From: Rhodosorus marinus CCMP1338
Lineage: Eukaryota > Plantae > Rhodophyta
DNA: 64,000 nucleotides
Direction: 5' to 3'
Assembly: GCA_029953675.1 (NCBI GenBank)
Contig: JAMWBK010000008.1
Span: 1,860,001-1,924,000, forward strand
The notes under the pieces: generated by a model
The model's database searches: none
The model's input: only the letters and a program-made list of their open reading frames with translations
What the model was told of the DNA's origin: nothing
Part shown: piece by piece, positions 2,475 to 14,392 of the stretch
Numbering within the stretch: position 1 is the stretch's first letter
Layout: each line of letters starts with the position of its first letter
Program-made: the position numbers and the translations under genes

Positions 2475-3559
2475 TTAAGCATGAGCGATGGTCTTCTTCC
2501 CCGCTCTGAGATGAGATATATATACTTTCTGTGGAGTACTCCTGCTCGAAGTTGCCACATACAGCTCCTTCGGGGAGATCGACGTAATGACTCCCAGGAA
2601 CCGTTTCCCAGTGGATTTGCTCTGTACCGCCACTGTATTCGATTCTTCAAATCGCTCTTGCCGTACGTGCAATACACCTCGAGAATAGGTGACTTCTACA
2701 ACCGGACGTCCTCCTCGATCCTTCCCTTGGTCTCCTAAGGCGAAAGATGAACCTCGGAGATTTCAGCTTTGATAGTTCATCCCCAACCCTCCCAGAAGCA
2801 GCATTTTGAACGGAAAGAAACGACGTACTTGCGTTTCCGTACTGAGAAGAGGGCTTGTGCTGAGGTATTGAAGTGATCTTCGGGGGCATTACAGTCTCCA
2901 AGCCTAAAAGCATGGCTTCGATGTCATGTTGAAGCTCATCCCAGGTTAGGGAAACTCTTAGCAATCCTTCCTTTTGGACACCTCCGAGCAGTCCGGCACA
3001 GTAGATATCCTCCGGCGTCGCGTTTTTTCCTCTTCTGTTCAGCTGTTTTCGAAGAGCTAGAGAGGGAAATTCCGGTCTTTGCTCGTCAGTTATCTGAAGC
3101 GATAGAAGCCACTATGGGCGCAAAGTTTCCCACGGCTCATACCTCTGGGAAGAAACGAATACAGCTTCTTTCGTCTACTTGAGAACGAAGAGAATATTTT
3201 CTCACGATAGTATCTCTTGTCAGCTTCGAACTCATCCCAGGCCTGCTTCACCTCTGCTTCAAAGCACTTCTCAGAATTCTCAAGCTGAAATGTCCTGATT
3301 TCGTCCGCCATATGAACTCTGTGCTGTTTCTTCTTCTCAAGATCTTCCAGTTCCTTTAGATATTCTCCATTTTCACCTTAAAAGATCGAGCAAATAACCC
3401 GGCCAGCTTCAGAACCAGTCCAAGCCAGTCCGCAAGCGAACACTACATCTCCTTACCCGCTAGAATTTCCTCATGCTCTTTCTTGAGCGTCTTCAGATCA
3501 TCCTCAAGTTGCTGAATCCTCAGATTCTCATGCTCTTCATCCTGAGATTCCGAAGGCAT
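2475..3559 (-). CDS. Sds3/BRMS1-like coiled-coil protein (Sin3-HDAC complex subunit), multi-exon; 3' end uncertain
   Basis: Manual splice gives MPSESQDEEHENLRIQQLEDDLKTLKKEHEEILA|GENGEYLKELEDLEKKKQHRVHMADEIRTFQLENSEKCFEAEVKQAWDEFEADKRYYREKIF, resembling the Sds3-like coiled-coil pattern. Confidence 0.55.
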
Positions 3560-6261
3560 GTTTCTTCGATCAACACGAGCCACGCGGCTCCCCTAAATGA
3601 AACACAAAAATCAACTCGTTGAAACGAAGGTTCTTCCCTTTGATCCTCAGTCCATCCGACTCTCAATCATCCTTCAAAAAAAATCCGTCCTGAAAACACT
3701 AAAAAAATCCTCCTAAATTACCAAATCCTTAGAGAAGAACATTCTGCCTCGTTCCAATCGATGCAGAACAAATAAGCCGGACACATCGATGCTTCTCTCC
3801 AACCTTCCCCCAGGAAACAAAAACCCTTCCAGTCCTATTGAGCACCACCGACTAGAAAGACTTCAACTATGAACTTCTTCTCTGCAGAAAGATAGCTTCA
3901 GTATCTAAAACTTTCTCCCCGCCATGCATGCCCCGACAATCCTAATCCACCCTGTACCCGTCCTCTTCACCGATTTGCCGAGCAGCTGACTGGAGCAATG
4001 TCGCAGGGAATTCTCTTGAGGCGGCAGTTCTGTTCAGTTCAAGTTGTTTTTTGGAAGTGAATTCGTCTTGGTGGAATCATTAATCCCAGCGCAGTACAAT
4101 ACATCTCTGTGGGAGCATACCCTATGCGACGGAGGGATCGGCGGGTTTACCTCATCACGGTTTTGACGACTTGACGATGGCAATACATCGTTTGCGAGTT
4201 CTAGATGAGCAATATTGTGTATTATAGTGATCGAAGAGGACACCTTACCTGAATGAGTCGTTCTGTTCCACTCCCAGACATTGTAGCTGTTCTTCAAGTA
4301 GAGCCTATGGCTTGCTTAAACGGTCGCACACCTCCAACCCCCCCATTTGTCTGAGCTGAATACAGATCTTTCATTGGCTATCTCGATCGAGCTTGAAATG
4401 AATATTAGATAAGTTTCATCAGTTCGTTTCGTATAAACACTCTTAATTGGCTTAAAGGAAAACAATTCTCGCATGATTGGCTTATAAAGCTATATTTTTT
4501 ATATTTGCGTCTTTCTGATGAGCCGGTTTCCGTGAAAGTCGCGCGCTCGACATAATATAGGGAGATATATACTCAAGTTAGGGCCATTTTCCTATCCTTA
4601 AAACTAAAAAACTCAACATATCAATTTTGGAAGAAAAATAATACATACCTGTTCGAGGTTTTCTGTTTTGGGTATTTTAGGATATGATGGGGCCATGAAG
4701 CAGACGAGGTTGCGGGGACCAACCTATGAGGTAAACAGGGTTGCCGTGGGAGTCTCGACCTACGTCGAGTAGTCCACGCTGTCAATCGACTCTCTACGTT
4801 GAAGTGTGCTTGGTTCGGACTTTCCACCTCCGCACCTACCCAATCGGTTCGATCATCGCCATTGGGGCAAGTTCGCCCTGGAATTCCGCGGGCAGCGTAC
4901 CCGTGAATCCTACCTCTTGTTTTCTCAGGAGAGAGGGGATGATTCTACCATGATTTCGTATCCGTTCTGCAACGCGAGGCCAGTTACTCACTTGCCACTG
5001 CGTGCATCCACCCACCTTTGTGTCCACTGGGAGGGAGCCCGGCATCTTGGCAAAACTGCCCTAGATTCCTCCCGCGCCCCTATCCGACTCGCTCCGTCCG
5101 CAACCTGGAAGCAACTCTTCTAACCGTCCTGGTCAAACCCCGGCACGGCGAGTGGTTTTGACAATTTGGCCATGCCTGTTTTTTGACGGTCAGCCGCTAG
5201 TGCAGAGTATGCGTTTACAGTTCGGATGCTATTTGGCTTCCTGCGCTTAAAACTGACGTTCTCTATGAATGTGACAGCTCATGCAACTGTGCAGATATCC
5301 TCTCGATTCTATACTATGCAGGTAACATCAATGTGCCCCCCCACCAGCGAGTCTCTCCCCTCCTCTAAAAGCTGTCACCGCCTTTACGTTGCAACTAATT
5401 GTTTCAAGAGTAAAATTTCAACGACTGAACTGATGAACGAATCAAAGACGACTTTCTACTCTCTTCGATCCAATAAGGAGAAAGAGACGTTCCTATTCGT
5501 GTAAATTGACAGATCTCTGACACGGACAAATCACTACATTAATTTTTGAATAAAAATAGTCGATGCAGTCTTGTTGAGAGCAAGATTTTACTCAAAAACA
5601 ATTCTTGTCGAAGACGATTTTTTGTCATAAAATAATCTTTTCATTTATAAAGAAAGAAAAATCACTTGTTACACGACAAATATTATATTGACGTCGTGAT
5701 TTCTTTTTTTATTTTCTGACATATTTTTCCATAGGGGTAGAAGATTTGTAAATTCTAGATGAATATTCCAAATAAAGAATGTATGTATCTGAAATTTTGC
5801 CAACTTTTCTTTTAAATTGAAGAAAGAGCAAGAAAAATCCATATATAGGTACAAAATTTGTGATATAGAAACTAAAAAATGTAGATATGTTTCTTGTTTT
5901 TCACCCTCTATGAAAGCTATCAAAAAGTTATGGACGGACCTTGCCCGTATTGCAGTCATTTGAATTGAAATATTTTCTAAGAATTTTTGTGTCTAAAACT
6001 TGGCTGGAAAAGGGGTTTTTGGCGCACGAAGTAGTTTGAAAATTTTGGCTACTTAAGGAGTCTGGTTATGTGGACTGGATGTGGTGCGAGCCGTGGGGAG
6101 GAGTGCGAGAACAGGATGGGAGGAGTATGGAGACTGAGAGATCAGGTCTTGGAAGAAATATGCACTGAATAAAGTGTAAATGAAGTTTCTGCTGGAGGAT
6201 TAGTTTGGTAGGATTTCTTTTGGTGGACGGTGTCGTTTTGGGTACTGAGTAGTTGGCAGGT

Positions 6262-9075
6262 ATGGCAAAACCGGGTAGGCAGAAGAGCCGGACGTGGGAT
6301 CATTTTCGGCCGGTCCCGGGTACATCGAGGATGCGATGTACGCGGTGCACTACTGAGGTTACAGCGAGGCGTGATCGTATGCAGAAGCACTGGGATGGTT
6401 GTGTGGCGCAGCCGCGCGAGTCTGAGCACAGTCTCATTACCAAACCCGGGGACAGGAGAGACGGGGATCCGCGGTGGAATCAACCCGGGAGGAAAAGAAC
6501 GGCGACTTGGAGGCACTTCAAGGACTCCCCGGATCATAAGGGTAAAGCTCGATGTGATAAATGCGGTTACGAATTGTCAGCAAGGGTCGACCGGATGAAA
6601 AAGCATCTCATAATCTGCCGTCCTGAGCTTGGGATTGAAATAGAATCCACAAAAGGCGTTAAACCAGAACCGTCACCTCCAGACCCAGTACAACAAACCC
6701 CCCAAAACGGCCTGGAGAGGACGGCCAGTCGTCGATTGACGGATTCCGACGTGAGGGCTCTCAACAGGACTTTGGGAAGGCTAATTCTCAGACATGACAT
6801 ACACATCGGCCTACTTGATGATCCGGAACTGAAAAAGTAAGAAACCCTCGAAGAGAACCCAGAAAAACCAACAATAGAAGCCCTGTCATTGACACTGACA
6901 TCAACGCGGCGCCGTTGGTGGCGACGAGGATGGTCTTGAACGAATAAGGACAGGCTTCCTCCTTTCAGCTCCTCGTTCTCGGAGAACAGAGATCGCTTAG
7001 GGTCTTACAAGCAACTGAACGTTTACCTTTCTTTTACAGTCTCTGGCATGGTACGGTTTACGTCCCTCCTAGTCGAAGGAGTTGGATGTCGGTGATCGAG
7101 GATCTGTGGAGAATGGAGAAGAGCAAGTCCGAAACTTTTGTTCAGAGGTCTAGGCGTTTAACGCTCGTCACAGATGCGTGTAGAGAACCCAAAACTCCTC
7201 ATTTAGCCAGCTTTATTGCGGTTAATGAGAATGGGGAGAGTGTCATGTGGGATATGTCTCCCGTGTCGGCGGATGTAACAGTAGAGAACGTCGGAGAAGG
7301 ACTAAAGATGAGGCTGAATCGTCTCAGACAACTTGAAAAGGTTGTTGCGGTTACTATGGATGGAGGTGTCATGATGAACAGCGTGCGGAGAGCCCTTGAA
7401 AAGGATGCCGCGTACGAAGGTAAGGATCGTCGTAGAAAAGCTGAATTAGCTCAGGTTGCTGCTTACCGCATCTGATCGGTTCATGTTTTTCCGGGCTCTC
7501 GATCTCTCAGGCGTCATTTTCGGCCACTGTTTGGTACAGCAGACGAGGAAGATGGCCAAGGACTTGCTGATCGCGGGAGGGGACCTGTGGACGAAGCTAA
7601 AGACAGTCGAGCGAATCTGCTCCCAAATTGTTGCCTCGAGCGAGGCGCAAGAGTTTCTACGAACGTTCGAAGGCTACAAGGAAGTAGAACCGCAAGGTGT
7701 CAACGGAAGTGAATGGAATTCCGTGTTGTATTGTTTGATCCGGATCACTCAGAATAGGCCCGCGTTAAAGACCCTGGTCCGTAGAGGTGAGCTAGCGCCT
7801 AGCTCAGCAACTTGAAAGCGTGGAGCTTCGCTCTCAGCAGGCAGATATTTCCCGCTAGGTTTGTCCGTGGGCATTGATTTTGAGGAGAAGGAAGCCATTG
7901 CCGATGAGGAGTTCTGGCTGGCCGTTGAAGGATTCATGCCTGTTGCGAGAGTCTTCTGTTTTCTTCAGGGACTATCTGAGAGTTGTGAGCTGACATCAGG
8001 TACGGCGATTCCGTTGCGTGTTTTAGAATGCTTTCAACAGTGTTGGAGATGAGCTGAGTTGTTGGGTGCTGAATTGGGTTTTTGTGCAGGCTGCGTGGCA
8101 TTTGGATTCTACTGGATTCGGAGGATAGTGCAGACGTCAAAGAACTTTACCGATGTGCAGCGGGAGACGATGACCGAGGCAATCGAAGAGAGAATTCGAT
8201 TGGCGCTTGGGAAGGAAGCATGCGTCTCGTGGTATCTCGACCCGCGGCTGAGGGGTGCGGGAATGAAGGATCGCGATATCCACAAGACATGTGTTGCGGC
8301 GTCAGACATGGCCGTTCGGCTAGGAATCTTTGGGGACGAGGAAGCTGAGAGTTGGAAAGACAACCTGTTCTTGGAATGGCACGACTACAAGGACGGCAAG
8401 GGATCTTTTGATCTCTCCTCTTGCTGGAGTCCGGCAGTGACCAGGAAGCCGGAAAGGTACTTCATCAGCTTGATGCTTTTCGTTTGTTCGTTTCGGACTA
8501 TCACGGTTACTCACAGTCCGTCCTCGTCTGTACCCAGGTTTTGGAAGCTTCATCAGGGCCATTCCGATCACGTTGCGAAGTTGGGCTTACTTGTCACAGA
8601 TTACTGCTGCCACATTTCGGACTGCTCCAGGTCGACCTCTAGACTAACAGCAGAGCAGGTGATGCGAGGTCCAGGTCGTGACCTGGAACGACTGATTGCA
8701 ACGGAGTCCGTGAAGTGGTCAAGCAGAAAGTTGCTAGACGCTGGAAAGATCCAAAGGAGAATGGCGTACCTCATGAGGGAATACCGAGCTCTGCATCCAT
8801 CAAGCAGTGTCGAAGGACCGGATTCTATTTCGAATACCTGGGAGAATCGGGGTATTAGGTCTCGGCCGTCGAAGCAAGTGGAGGAAGAAGACGGCCTCTG
8901 GGAAGATGTTACCGGTTCAGCGGAGGGAGATTTTCTCGACTCAATACTGACAGAATATGGTAGCGAAAATGGAGAGGACATTCTGGACCGGGGGGAGAAC
9001 ACGCTGCTGGACGCCAAGACGGATTTGAGATGTTTCGAGGAGAAGATGGACAGCTTGATATCAGTGGCCAGGTAG
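6262..9075 (+). CDS. hAT-transposase-derived protein with two N-terminal BED zinc fingers, RNase-H-like core and hAT C-terminal dimerisation region; about 5 introns; probably domesticated and catalytically dead
   Basis: BED1 TWDHF..MRCTRC..RMQKHWDGC and BED2 TWRHF..ARCDKC..RMKKHLIIC. Core segments YVPPSRR, LTLVTDAC, VAVTMDGG, GHCLVQ..KDLL, SEWNSVLYCL, EEFWLAV, SWYLDPRL, FWKLH..VAKLG..SDCSRSTS appear in hAT order. GT-AG introns at about 6837-7039, 7420-7510, 7786-7858, 8000-8089 and 8457-8516 join the frames. Confidence 0.8.
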
Positions 9076-9381
9076 TCGCTGAGGCGGATACACTGCCGAC
9101 TGCTCTTACCCGTTGGCGCTGTCGACGTCTAGCCGTAGTCTCTCTATGAGAATGGGATACTGACGGCAGGTCAGAATCTACCTCGCGATGACGCAGAAGG
9201 GTCGAATGGCGCGCTCATATCCGCCCTGGAAACTCGCCACCAGCCCGAGCAGGGGGAACCAGCTCTTTCGCCCGGGAAGAGCCTCCCTCCCTTGGAACGT
9301 GTCCGCGATAATTGCTCAAGTTATTGTTGAAGAACATGGAAGGAGGAAAGGTGCTTTGAAAGGGGACTGGCTGTAGCTGGG

Positions 9382-9482
9382 TATTCCGGCGATAGACGAG
9401 AGGAGTCCACTATGTTCGGTGTCTAGTCATCTTATTCCAGCGATAGAGGAGAGGAGTCCACTATGCTCGGTCTCTAGTCATC
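9382..9482. repeat. Tandem direct repeat, 2 x 50 bp (period 51)
   Basis: tattccggcgatagacgagaggagtccactatgttcggtgtctagtcatc versus tattccagcgatagaggagaggagtccactatgctcggtctctagtcatc: 4 mismatches by eye. Confidence 0.9.
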
Positions 9483-10493
9483 CCCCACTGCCGCGGAGAG
9501 ACGCATTCTCTTGCTAGAGATTCTGGTATGCTTAACTGACCCTTTTCCAAATCGTGGGAGTGGGACTATCAATTTGTTCGGAGCCTTGGGGCGCAGCAAC
9601 GACGTAAGTGGAAAGGTGGTTCGTACAAGTTTCTACTCGAGCTGGTACAGTTTACGAAATCTGGCCTGGGTGGTCTGAATAGAAGAGGTTTGGTAGTATC
9701 TAAAGAACGAAACCAGTGTACAGACAAAACAGGAGCAATGGAAGAGCTGCAGGCCTTTCTTGCTCGGAGCTATGGAAACGGACAAGAGCAGGCTTTCAAA
9801 TATGTGGCAACCATTTTTATCGGGAAGTTTGGACGCCATGGAATCAGCATCCATTTCTATCGCAGCCACCGCCCGCTTGCGACCAAAACGCCTCCACCAA
9901 TAAGCGGCGACCACGAGCATGCCACGGACGGCCACCAACATTTGCTGAGGAAGTTGATAGGAACATTCCTAACTATGATCCCTGTGTAGTAGAAAATGAA
10001 AAAGGCTCGAACTCTAGGGTTTTCTGGTCCCCACCATCTAAGATCTAGATTTGTTTCTGCGACAAAAAAAAAAATGAAAACTTAACAACGCCAAAAGCGG
10101 AGATTGCCCCCGCCTCACGGAGGCGCATTTGCAACACGCATCTTGTGTAGCCACTTCAAGAAATGAGTCGCGACCGACAGCTTTTCATACCAAAGCCCTA
10201 ACTTTGCGTCGAAACTCGGGCCGCGAGAGCATGGTCTCCTCGGAGCTTTTGTACTCGCATTCAATCACAGCAAACCCCCCCCTTTCCTTTTCAGACGGGC
10301 GGATCGATGGTTTTTTCAAATTAATGAAGAAAATTCGCCGTCCTTAAGCAAGGCCGCATTATCGACCATTTGTTCTTGACTGAAGAAATTAAACTCTTTC
10401 AAATATTTTATTTAGTTTTCTCAATGAGAGCCTTTCGCTAAGGGGGTGGAAAACGAATTTAGAAATATTGCATGGGGGTTAGGAGCTGTTCGC

Positions 10494-10937
10494 TCAACAA
10501 ACGGATTTCGATTTAGAAACATTGCATGGAGTAGGCGCGTTCACTGGCACCTTTTTTTTGGGAAGGTTTGGGTTGTTGTACAAGGCCCGGCTCGTCGCGG
10601 GGGAATTGGGGAGCTCAGGTTTTCCTTCTCGAGTAAATACCAGTCTCCTAAAGCTGGCGGAATTGATAGACTCGTTTGCTACTCGAGCGTTAACGGGTAC
10701 CACCTGCTGTTGGCGACGAGTACAATCTCTTCTTATTAAAGAGTGGAGCCAGACTTGAGAACGTGCAGCCCTCAGAATCTTGCGAGGCAGAAGTGCGACA
10801 GGTCGGATGCTGAACAACAAGGCGCTCTCGTAAACGACGCTGAGACAGGCTTGACACGCCTCCAACACTCTCACACCCACAATCGTCTTTGTAACACAGC
10901 ACAGAATCCAGCTACTCAAGGCTTCTTGCTGAAGCAT
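10494..10937 (-). CDS. Unidentified protein-coding segment (faint resemblance to an L7Ae/RPP38-like fold)
   Basis: 147-codon open frame ending ...LPKKKVPVNAPTPCNVSKSKSVC*. No diagnostic motif; the resemblance is weak. Confidence 0.2.
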   Translation of the reverse strand: MLQQEALSSWILCCVTKTIVGVRVLEACQACLSVVYESALLFSIRPVALLPRKILRAARSQVWLHSLIRRDCTRRQQQVVPVNARVANESINSASFRRLVFTREGKPELPNSPATSRALYNNPNLPKKKVPVNAPTPCNVSKSKSVC

Positions 10938-12360
10938 ACAACTTTCGTCTCTCTACCATCTATTCATCTCGTACCTCCAAAGGCGCCGTTTAGATCGCTG
11001 GTTGCTTTGGTGCAGGGCTCCTCTTAAGGCTCTCGTTCAACAGCCTCCAAAGCCCGAAGAACTGCTTGGATGGCGCGGCTGTTTAGGTGGCTGAGCTCTT
11101 ATCCATCCCGTCTATAATCTCCCAAGGCGCAGCTCAAATGCTGGCTGCTTTGGAGCTGGGCTCTCTCTACCTGAAGGGCTCCTAGGGGGCGATCTGGTCT
11201 AACGGCCTCTATAGCCACTGAGGTGCCTTGTATTAGAAATCCATTTTGTTTTTGATCACAACCATCATTCCCTCCTCAGGGGTTACGGCGGGAGGAGATC
11301 TTAATTCCGTCTAGAAACCACCACCACCACAGAAGCTCCGACAAAACAAAAATTCAAATGATTCAGGAAAGACATGCAAATCGCGACTCTACCGCAAACT
11401 CTACAAAGAGTTGGTAAGCCTCGCGTAATGAAATGCGACACCTTTCAGAAACTACCAAAACACAAAATAAACATACTTAAAATATTGTATTTTTCATGTC
11501 TAGTTTTTTCTTTTTCATCTCGGACCATCAGTTGAAAAAGAATTGCAGTAGAAGCAGAATCCACCTAATTATTAATTTATTATGATATCTAGAAAATTTT
11601 GAACCTATACAAGGGGGGGAAACGTATCTTGACACGAAATTTATATTTGAATGTTTTCTTCACCATTTTCTGTAGTACAAAAAAGTGATTAAAAATTGAG
11701 ACATATATCCAGTTCTTCTTCAGGTTAAAAAAATGGATGAAAATGTTCTTCGAATATTTGCATTTCAATTGTCATAAAAACGAGGTTACCAGCAAAAGTA
11801 CTTCTGAAGTGGAAGAGGAGGAAGGAGGATGGGGAGGGGTTGGAAATTAATCAATAAACGAGTCAAACCATTTTGAGTATTCTATCAGAAACGGGGGGGT
11901 GGGTCGGGATTCCTTTATATAATATATAAAAGAAAATTTCTTGTTTAGATGAAAGAGACTAGAAAGGGAAATCCCCCCGGTAACGACCACTGCGAGATCA
12001 AATCATGGTCTTTCGTTTTTCATATACAAAAGACGATACCTTTACTGGTATTATCATTTTTTGAAATATTGAAAATATTATATCGTCTATCCAGTATAAC
12101 GATTAGAACGATGTGGGGTGGGGTGGATCCCGGCAAGGGCATCCAGTTTTACTCACTCTTTCACAATTTTAACCAAATTTGTTTTTGTATCCAATTTTTT
12201 TTTTTTTGCAAAGTATCTCAAAACCTTGAAAAAAGTAATTCGTGGTTTAATAGGTCCAATTCCATCTCACCTTGCGTGATTTACCCATCAAGACGTCCAA
12301 CCCCCCCATGTTTCAAGCGGCTGTCACCACTATCGATTATTCAATTAAAAAATAAATATA

Positions 12361-12830
12361 CCCAATCAAAATCTCCCATGTTAGTTCCCACAATATTGAA
12401 AGTGTTTAGAAAAATAAGGGGTCCTGGTCAGATATCCTTTTCAGCATTTGTTTTCCGTTTTTAATATTGTGTTTTGGAAATATTTATTACAAAAACCGTT
12501 AATGGGGGGTTTGTGAGCGTTTTTAGTGAACCTGTCAGATTAGTTTTGTTTGTTTTTTGAGGGTCTAGTGGAAAACTAACCACTCTCACCCAATAAACCC
12601 AATCAAAATCTCCCATGTTAGTTCCAACAATATTGAAAGCATTTAGAAAAATAGAGGGTCCAGGTCAGATATCCTTTTTGGCATTTGTTTTCTGTTCTTG
12701 ATATTGTGTTTTGGAAATATTTAAGGGACCATCCGTTTAGTGGGGGGTATGAACATTTTTAGTTAACTTTCTTGTATTAGTTTTTGTTTGTTTTTTGAGG
12801 GTTTAGTCGAAAACTAAACACTCTAACCCC
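12361..12830. repeat. Diverged tandem duplication of an about 235-bp AT-rich unit upstream of glutamine synthetase
   Basis: Copies 12361-12591 and 12598-12830 both start cccaatcaaaatctcccatgttagttcc and share ggtcagatatcctttt, atattgtgttttggaaatattta and ttttgtttgttttttgaggg..gaaaactaa.cactct.accc. Confidence 0.92.
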
Positions 12831-12973
12831 AACTGGGAGGAGAGTGAGAAAAATGTGGGGGGGGGGTGGTTTGGACGGGGCCAACGCGGAAGTAACATTG
12901 GTAGGTTGGTTGACATTGAATGTCAACGGGTTACCACAGATCGTGAATGGAAAGGGAGTTTCCCCCGATGAGG

Positions 12974-12981
12974 TATAAATA
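12974..12981 (+). promoter_or_regulatory. Putative TATA box of glutamine synthetase
   Basis: TATAAATA about 160 bp upstream of the ATG at 13133, followed by a G/A-rich leader like other genes here. Confidence 0.5.
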
Positions 12982-13132
12982 AGCTGAGCATGGGAGGAAA
13001 GAGCGAATGGAAGAGGAGGGGGGAGGGTTTGGTATCTCAGAGAGTTTTGGGCTGTAGGAAGACCTTGTTGAGCCGTCTCCTTGTTCTGTCTCTGTGTTAG
13101 TTGTTCTGTGTGATTTTGCGGCGAGCGGAAGG

Positions 13133-14392
13133 ATGTCTTTGAAAAAGCTAACGTTGCCGGATAATGTTTGTATTGCGGAGTACGTCTGGTTGGATGGGTT
13201 TTACAAGCTGAGATCCAAGGCGAGAACGCTTGACGAGGTCCCGACCTCTGCGGAAGATCTGCCGGAGTGGAACTACGATGGATCGTCCACTGGGCAGGCT
13301 CCGGGAACGGACTCTGAAGTCATCCTTAGACCCCAGGCGATCTATAAGGATCCATTCCGTGGTGCACCTCATATACTCGTCATGTGTGACACATACAACC
13401 CTCAGGGACTTCCTCTCGAGACAAACCAGAGGCACGACTGTGCTATCGTCATGCAAAAGGCCAAGGATCTCCTCCCGTGGTTCGGGTGTGAGCAGGAATA
13501 CTTCCTGATCGATAAGGCTACCGGCAGACCACTTGGATTCCCAGCGGAAGGGTACCCACTCCCTCAGGGTCCGTACTACTGCGGTGCTGGGGCCGGAAAG
13601 ATCTTTGGGCGCGATGTTGCGGAGGAGCACTACATTGCGTGTCTTTACGCTGGAATCAAGATGAGCGGAATCAATGCCGAGGTCGCTCCAGGCCAGTGGG
13701 AGTTCCAGATTGGTCCCGCTGTCGGCATGGAGGAAGGGGACATGATGTGGATGGCCAGGTATATCCTCGATCGAGTTACCGAGAACTACAACATGACAAT
13801 TTCCTACGACGCAAAGCCAGAGAAAGGTAAGCTTCGGCTCGAACAGATTCAACCTCAGGATTACGGACTTGGCATTGATCAATTTGGTCTGTTTCTGGCT
13901 TGCAGGGGACTGGAATGGATCCGGAGCCCACACCAACTTCTCAACTCAGCCAATGCGTGACGAGGGTGGCTACGAGGGTGCTATTATTCCCGCCCTTGAG
14001 CGCCTTGCCCTCAAGCACAAGGAGCACATTGCTGCATACGGCGAGGGCAATGAGCACAGGCTCACAGGGACGCACGAGACTTCTAGCATGGATAAGTATG
14101 TAGAGCTGACTTCCACTTTTAATGGGGGATCTGCCTTAAGTGTGGAGCGGAGACTGACCCAATTTTCTTGTGTCGATCTTTTCACCCGAATAGATTTAGC
14201 TATGCAAAGGCTGACCGTGGAGCGTCCGTCCGAATTCCGAACACCACTTATGCTAGTGGTAAGGGCTACTTTGAAGACCGCCGCCCGTCGGCATCGATGG
14301 ATCCGTACGTTGTTACAAAACTGCTGGTCAGCACCTGCTGCGATATCCCACTTCCGACAACCAAATTCTCTGAAACGCGGGCTGAACACTAG
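13133..14392 (+). CDS. GLN1: Glutamine synthetase type II, probably cytosolic; introns 13827-13905 and about 14096-14193
   Basis: [93 protein letters not shown]. No transit peptide. Confidence 0.97.

Follow-up and report, generated by a model that had tools for sequence, protein, structure and literature searches.

A probably domesticated hAT transposase with twin BED fingers and an eroded catalytic centre in the red alga Rhodosorus marinus

Domestication of hAT transposases is familiar from angiosperms (SLEEPER), animals (ZBED) and yeasts. The vertebrate ZBED proteins (ZBED1, 4, 6 and others), in which one or more BED fingers are joined to a hAT-derived body, are transcription regulators, and the yeast hAT-derived protein Kat1 cuts host DNA in mating-type switching. 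SLEEPERs are nuclear DNA-binding proteins; among them, DAYSLEEPER combines a single BED finger with a functional dimerisation domain, is without the residues for transposition and is not flanked by repeats (PMC3499209). SLEEPERs carry a single C2H2 BED finger, a recognisable hATC and no coding introns, and the family is reported to be absent from gymnosperms, mosses and algae (PMC3499209). The present analysis concerns a gene at positions 6262-9075 (+) of a 64-kb stretch from the nuclear genome of the red alga Rhodosorus marinus CCMP1338 (assembly GCA_029953675.1, contig JAMWBK010000008.1; PMC10250338), the whole of which is referred to below as the window. With a probability of about 0.78, the gene descends from a DNA transposase of the hAT superfamily and is now a single-copy host gene, domesticated for a presumed DNA-binding function and with DNA cutting lost.

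Like DAYSLEEPER and the other SLEEPERs, the Rhodosorus gene is hAT-derived, encodes an N-terminal BED region and a body ending in a putative dimerisation region, has lost residues for transposition and is without flanking hAT repeats. Unlike them, it carries two CCHC fingers, its coding sequence is interrupted by five introns, and Pfam detects no hATC; the protein also has an acidic tail and an additional helix at its end. No SLEEPER-like proteins were found among its closest relatives and, since SLEEPERs are reported as absent from algae, it is no SLEEPER orthologue. Likeness to ZBED proteins was seen as weak matches between a family-plus-hAT profile (A2) and the BED domains of ZBED1 and ZBED2 (2ct5, E 0.02; 2djr, E 0.29). 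However, no specific kinship was seen, the nearest relatives being oomycete, placozoan and fungal.

A full-text search of the literature returned no publication about BED-finger proteins of red algae, and no title or abstract treating a domesticated hAT in red algae or oomycetes was found. A highly reduced gene inventory is described for red algae (PMC6811547). The gene adds a candidate sequence-specific regulator to these gene-poor algae and points to an unnamed clade, in which distant eukaryotes have fixed one and the same transposase scaffold. As an instance of a mobile element becoming a host gene, the Rhodosorus gene is fairly ordinary, useful as an annotation and without a new principle.

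hAT ancestry and gene structure

The original prediction, made by eye from the DNA, was that all hAT core blocks are present. Pfam is silent on hAT in this protein and independent support for that reading was therefore needed. A profile hidden Markov model (HMM; A4) was built from 11 validated hATs, in which Pfam recognises DUF659 (10/11) and Dimer_Tnp_hAT (6/11). Applied to a six-frame translation of the window, it matched exon 1 twice (finger 1, 3.9e-7; finger 2 and downstream sequence, 3.4e-15), exon 2 (1e-15) and exon 3 (3e-7), with no match elsewhere in the 64 kb. The same model was compared by hhalign with an alignment of the gene's own family (A3), which has 0 members with a Pfam hAT match. 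The resulting probability was 99.95% (E 2.3e-38) over 537 columns, spanning amino acids (aa) 73-641 of the query. Residues 581-641, which as an isolated segment have no Pfam match, were aligned to residues 495-559 of protein P0029, called Dimer_Tnp_hAT by Pfam. A phmmer scan (HMMER) of 1.84 billion representative proteins gave 44 matches, including P0029 and P0023 (E ~1e-7), and Pfam calls both DUF659 and Dimer_Tnp_hAT in each. Using phmmer against PDB sequences, no match to the protein was obtained, and a word-indexed homologue search, started from the single sequence or from the family alignment alike, returned the gene's own cluster only.

The AlphaFold2 model of the protein had a mean predicted local distance difference test score (pLDDT) of 76.5 and a predicted template modelling score (pTM) of 0.69. 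Following the fingers, it contains a β1-β2-β3-α-β4-α-β5 unit, then a long insertion made only of helices and finally a helical C-terminal region, corresponding to the order of the RNase H fold, with D237 at the end of strand 1 and D299 after strand 4. Upon searching PDB with Foldseek, the top 10 matches were all Hermes transposase (E 2e-10 to 2e-7, target template modelling score 0.47-0.64, 509-553 aligned columns), and the next match had an E value of 0.02. By sequence, Hermes was found when true hATs were in the profile (A2); otherwise it was found by profile-profile comparison or by fold. hAT ancestry was established by the validated-hAT HMM, hhalign and Foldseek. The gene descends from a hAT transposase and the full architecture is kept: BED finger(s), N-terminal helical domain, RNase H-like core with an all-helical insertion domain splitting it, and an apparent homologue of the dimerisation domain.

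Hermes of Musca domestica and the Rhodosorus protein are alike in overall fold (Foldseek E 2e-10, ~540 columns), and the latter retains the residues equivalent to D180, D248, C265 and W319. They differ in that identity is ~11-13% and the equivalents of H268, R318 and E572 are Q, E and S in the Rhodosorus protein. Also unlike Hermes, the Rhodosorus protein has two BED fingers, ~115 extra C-terminal residues and no transposon ends. The Hermes sequence ends with the dimerisation domain, whereas the terminal helix is found in Rhodosorus and its oomycete and Trichoplax relatives.

Twin tandem BED fingers had also been predicted and were recovered by each approach, in part or in full. Pfam zf-BED (PF02892) matched finger 2 only (aa 82-116, E 4e-7) and missed finger 1, the validated-hAT HMM matched both, and in the AlphaFold2 model both fold as strand-strand-strand-helix with pLDDT >90. 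The two fingers are 44% identical, and the BED finger is tandemly duplicated in the Rhodosorus gene.

The window contains one protein-coding gene at this locus, consisting of six exons and five introns (Table 1). Its spliced product is identical to KAJ8903084.1 (P0002; 758 aa, locus tag NDN08_006399, "hypothetical protein", Rhodosorus marinus CCMP1338), and the database labels for the gene say nothing more than "hypothetical" or "BED-type domain-containing" protein. About five short in-frame GT-AG introns had been read by eye; exactly five are present. An alternative intron 3 acceptor from a by-eye model (7837|7838), in frame and 21 nt upstream of 7858|7859, would insert seven residues (AGRYFPL) and was rejected, annotation and transcripts both using 7859.

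Transcript evidence was taken from MMETSP products and contigs of a second Rhodosorus lineage (~91% aa identity), which is a sister lineage rather than strain CCMP1338. The full-length MMETSP product P0003 (760 aa) crosses 5/5 junctions without gaps (ELKN|LW, YE|G|VIF, VRR|GLS, TS|G|CVA and PER|FWK), and transcript product P0004 likewise spans all of them, so the predicted splicing was borne out in this lineage. Transcript contig L001 is partly processed, with intron 2 removed at 7419|7511 and introns 1 and 3 still present. In the second lineage, intron 1 is retained in P0006, P0007 and L001, and intron 5 in P0001, P0008 and L002. Retention of intron 1 gives a predicted protein of 194 aa with the two BED fingers only; retention of intron 5 gives one of 591 aa without the dimerisation region. 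These transcripts may be unprocessed RNA or regulated short isoforms.

Active site, selection and mobility

Catalytic positions were mapped onto Hermes using the combined alignment, the Hermes sequence match and a column table; the map rests on sequence and profile alignment and on the whole-fold Foldseek match. All readings made by eye were reproduced in the alignment: both Asp are kept (VTDAC, TMDGG), and the remaining motifs read CLVQ, SEW and SDCSRSTS. The DDE triad is not intact, D237 and D299 being kept and S610 standing at the position of Glu. From the CxxH and R-W motifs, Cys and Trp are kept and His and Arg are lost. By alignment, the equivalents of E572, H268 and R318 appear to be S610, Q328 and E386, as the original prediction had it. 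The E572 column holds Glu in every validated hAT reaching it, and His and Arg are present in all but one or two each. The RNRL motif following the catalytic Glu is eroded to GRDL. Residues at all mapped positions are identical in both Rhodosorus lineages. The protein is probably nuclease-dead and no longer able to cut or join DNA.

A domesticated protein that is still an enzyme, acting like a nuclease or recombinase through D237, D299 and another acid and cutting host DNA at defined sites, was regarded as quite improbable. In both lineages, under purifying selection, the two Asp, the CxxH Cys and the Trp counterpart of Hermes W319 have been retained, and an acid, D608, lies two residues before S610. 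However, S610, Q328 and E386 replace residues kept in nearly all validated hATs of the alignment, and the erosion of RNRL to GRDL argues in the same direction. D608 is the only acid near S610. In fragment P0020 (SDCERLWS) the same acid lies two residues before a retained Glu; D608 is therefore ancestral and no substitute or compensating change for the lost Glu.

For the analysis of selection, L001 and the Logan contig L002 of the second lineage were aligned to window positions 6208-8690, and nonsynonymous (dN) and synonymous (dS) divergence was estimated over 630 codons by the Nei-Gojobori method. The dN/dS ratio proposed as a check with the original prediction was 0.108 (dN 0.030, dS 0.279), far from 1. 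By region, it was 0.07 in the BED region, 0.31 in the linker and 0.10-0.11 in the core. The lineages differ at ~7.5% of exon sites and ~22% of intron sites (about threefold), with 24% for intron 1 versus ~8% for the exons, and exon indels were two 3-nt events only. The low dN/dS, the contrast between exons and introns and the few indels therefore identify a functional gene and not a relic. Purifying selection on the gene is strong. Decay to a relic or pseudogene, or a chance resemblance of a BED-finger protein to hATs, would fit the single BED finger seen by Pfam, but is extremely unlikely, the six-exon frame being open in two lineages with spliced transcripts and a dN/dS of 0.11. Moreover, the hhalign match extends over 537 columns at 99.95%, and Hermes accounts for all strong fold matches in PDB.

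The absence of terminal inverted repeats (TIRs) and target-site duplications noted by eye held in a systematic search. Between the flanking host genes (3560-6261 versus 9076-13130), inverted pairs of >=12 nt (<=2 mismatches) with an 8-bp duplication gave 0 candidates. The best generic inverted pair (5522-5545/10318-10341; 75% match) was rejected as a TIR, having no 8-bp duplication and being at chance level. Dispersed copies, which would have told against the original prediction, were not seen: tblastn and two HMMs detected no second copy in the window. The 90% identity cluster contains one genome protein, and every match >42% identical to the query in the library of 1.84 billion proteins is a fragment of the same gene. 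An autonomous hAT transposon that is mobile now, or was so recently, is almost certainly not what this locus holds. The full-length transposase architecture would suit such an element, as would the introns, which are found in many plant hAT elements (PMC3499209). Against it, the interval bounded by the neighbouring genes has no TIR accompanied by an 8-bp duplication, the window contains one copy, the catalytic Glu, His and Arg are replaced, and a lineage separated by dS 0.28 (dN/dS 0.11) has identical substitutions and intron positions.

In the favoured reading, that of a domesticated and probably nuclease-dead host protein, the two CCHC BED fingers would read specific DNA, and the transposase-derived body would provide a scaffold, with dimerisation or oligomerisation through its hAT-derived C-terminal part. 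Partners may be recruited by the disordered acidic tail together with the conserved helix at the terminus. Overall, the protein would regulate transcription or chromatin in the manner of DAYSLEEPER or the ZBED proteins.

Several points weigh against the favoured reading. As regards ancestry, Pfam searches with the whole protein and with three separate segments returned BED finger 2 only and no hAT domain. The family-only profile (A3) gave no match in PDB, and the hAT link needs intermediate sequences or profile-profile methods; in addition, the alignment feeding the AlphaFold2 model included true hATs. As regards catalysis, an acidic side chain may reach the third metal-ligand position, the map being alignment-based. 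The copy-number evidence covers the 64-kb window and the protein databases rather than the whole genome. Contigs of the second lineage (1.2-1.6 kb, with 54 bp of upstream sequence alignable) are too short for a synteny comparison. As far as the role goes, DNA binding, oligomerisation and a regulator function are suggested by the architecture of the protein.

Relatives and origin

The closest relatives belong to an unnamed hAT clade characterized by the motif LDPR-x-x-G-x-G, at 17-26% identity and E values down to 8e-14. Invariant in this clade are L-D-P-R, G515, F564, W570 and P578..F581-W582 (the LDPR..G and F..W..P..FW blocks). Its members include proteins labelled "hypothetical" or "BED-type" of the oomycetes Achlya, Saprolegnia, Lagenidium, Pythium, Phytophthora and Nothophytophthora, in at least 4 subfamilies; further members are one Trichoplax protein, one chytrid (Phlyctochytrium) protein and metagenomic fragments. 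Examples are OQR92324.1 (Achlya), XP_008610929.1 (Saprolegnia), DAZ93437.1 (Lagenidium), TMW59033.1 (Pythium), XP_002111742.1 (Trichoplax) and KAJ3089056.1 (chytrid). A conserved helix is present at the extreme C-terminus throughout the clade, including Rhodosorus (DLRCFEEKMDSLISVA in the query, GLEKIQSAMKSYLSVA in Nothophytophthora). With these relatives, the Rhodosorus protein shares the two invariant blocks and the helix and, with the oomycetes, eroded catalytic residues. It differs in having introns, the oomycete genes being intron-less, in the loss of the Glu that the Trichoplax and chytrid members keep, and in its position outside them in a neighbour-joining (NJ) tree.

Catalytic Glu and RNRL are intact in the Trichoplax and chytrid members, as are D, D and CxxH in Trichoplax; these members may therefore be real transposases. 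In the oomycetes the catalytic residues are eroded mosaically, several proteins having C-x-x-Q-Q like the query and some still having Glu. The copies of Achlya hypogyna and Saprolegnia diclina (Table 1) have no introns and share a gene order (Lipase_3, the gene, an unnamed gene, PAP2, PAP2, PhoD), and are therefore immobile orthologues. This synteny is independent evidence that the clade gets domesticated, and the oomycete twin-BED genes resemble a family of domesticated hAT genes. No neighbours were shared between the loci of Phytophthora and Pythium, so the synteny seen covers Achlya and Saprolegnia. Twin BED fingers are also found in the Achlya and Saprolegnia members. Those of Rhodosorus and those of the Saprolegniales had separate origins, as finger 1 is in each case most similar to finger 2 of the same protein (44% identity in Rhodosorus, 67% in Achlya).

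In the bootstrapped NJ tree (469 columns), Rhodosorus branched as sister (68%) to a group of Trichoplax and oomycetes (72%). That the algal lineage domesticated the gene independently is a plausible and simpler reading, compatible with the evidence. The strength of this reading is limited by the eroded, immobile oomycete genes in the same clade, several with the same H-to-Q change, and by bootstrap values of 68-72%. Inactivation that was not independent, with an inactive ancestor (H268 to Q) common to the red-algal and oomycete genes through endosymbiotic or horizontal transfer or through great age, is unlikely. It would account for the resemblance of CLVQQT in the query to CVVQQT, CLAQQS, CMIQQT, CMTQQS and CMAQQS in oomycetes, for the clade-specific C-terminal helix held in common, and for the Achlya and Saprolegnia members being likewise twin-BED, immobile and syntenic orthologues. 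On the other hand, the NJ tree places Rhodosorus outside oomycetes plus Trichoplax (72%) and Trichoplax keeps D, D, CxxH and E. Glu is kept in several oomycete lineages and lost in Rhodosorus, so that erosion is mosaic. The separate origin of the twin fingers (44% versus 67%) and the absence of introns from the oomycete genes, versus five here, point the same way.

A related and doubtful possibility is that the gene is the red-algal member of an old, unrecognised clade of hAT-derived host genes, fixed as immobile eroded genes in all major oomycete orders (at least 4 subfamilies) and in Rhodosorus. The shared C-x-x-Q-Q signature would then place inactivation before the separation of the red-algal and oomycete genes. 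If true, this would imply gene flow between red-algal and stramenopile lineages, or a very ancient domestication.

Transcript contig L003, from a JGI sample (3300016967) other than that of L001, was considered as a further orthologue and rejected, containing only a ~110-aa fragment of the family. Its positions 951-1520 share 28% identity with aa 419-517, read VDQR for a decayed LDPR and lie inside otherwise unrelated sequence (contig G+C content 51%). This piece may be a decayed or exapted fragment.

Feature coordinates and neighbourhood

Table 1. Positions of the exons, introns, domains and mapped active-site residues of the Rhodosorus gene in the window, and of the oomycete twin-BED genes in their own loci.
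Feature	Positions (strand)	Residues (aa)	Description
Exon 1	6262-6836 (+)	1-192	Start codon, both BED fingers, disordered linker; matches P0002; two matches of validated-hAT HMM
BED finger 1	6283-6402 (+)	8-47	Zinc ligands C26, C29, H43, C47; validated-hAT HMM independent E value 3.9e-7; pLDDT 92-93
BED finger 2	6490-6618 (+)	77-119	Zinc ligands C98, C101, H115, C119; pLDDT 92
Intron 1	6837-7039 (+)		203 nt, GT..AG, phase 2; retention leads to stop TAA at 6838-6840
Exon 2	7040-7419 (+)		N-terminal helical domain, RNase H-like core strands 1-4; D237, D299
Hermes D180 equivalent	7173-7175	D237	Motif VTDAC
Hermes W182 equivalent		C239	
Hermes D248 equivalent	7359-7361	D299	Motif TMDGG
Intron 2	7420-7510 (+)		91 nt, GT..AG; excised exactly in transcript contig L001
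Exon 3	7511-7786 (+)		Strand 5, start of helical insertion domain; C325..Q328, E386-W387 (7711-7716)
Hermes C265 equivalent		C325	Motif CLVQ
Hermes H268 equivalent	7537-7539	Q328	
Hermes R318 equivalent	7711-7713	E386	Motif SEW
Hermes W319 equivalent	7714-7716	W387	
Intron 3	7787-7858 (+)		72 nt, GT..AG; annotated protein and transcripts read VRR|GLS
Exon 4	7859-7999 (+)		Insertion domain, FW..L...LSE block
Intron 4	8000-8089 (+)		90 nt, GT..AG
Exon 5	8090-8456 (+)		Insertion domain with family-invariant L507-D508-P509-R510 and G515
Intron 5	8457-8537 (+)		81 nt, GT..AG; retention truncates protein ahead of dimerisation region
Exon 6	8538-9075 (+)		Putative homologue of hAT C-terminal dimerisation domain, S610, acidic tail, terminal helix, stop TAG 9073-9075
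Hermes E572 equivalent	8626-8628	S610	Motif SDCSRSTS
Hermes R573 equivalent		R611	
Hermes F575 equivalent		T613	
Hermes S576 equivalent		S614	
Acidic tail, predicted disordered	8800-9000 (+)	668-734	pLDDT <50, composition from sequence; poorly conserved
C-terminal amphipathic helix	9025-9069 (+)	743-757	DLRCFEEKMDSLISVA; pLDDT ~80
Achlya hypogyna twin-BED gene	L006 10001-12091		
Saprolegnia diclina twin-BED gene	L007 10001-12058		

The neighbours of the gene are ordinary host genes, with SMC, JmjC, Rdx and Sds3 upstream and glutamine synthetase and PPR downstream. The Sds3 gene (Sin3 corepressor), the immediate upstream neighbour, ends at 3559, and the glutamine synthetase gene starts at 13133. 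In Rhodosorus (L005 2873-4755, corresponding to window positions -866 to 1016) as in Achlya (L006 21535-22091), a Cupin_8/JmjC gene is located less than 10 kb from the hAT-derived gene. As distance and side differ, this shared proximity is probably a coincidence.

The flanking intergenic stretches, 3560-6261 (2.7 kb) and 9076-13132 (4 kb), look long for a gene-dense region. The four longest open reading frames of the unannotated downstream stretch (~4 kb) gave no match in Pfam. Within the upstream stretch, the 2-kb bin 4001-6000 is AT-rich (42% G+C). At 9382-9482, ~300 nt past the stop codon and probably in the 3′ untranslated region or just beyond, a 50-nt unit is present in two tandem copies, 92% identical and spaced by 51 nt.

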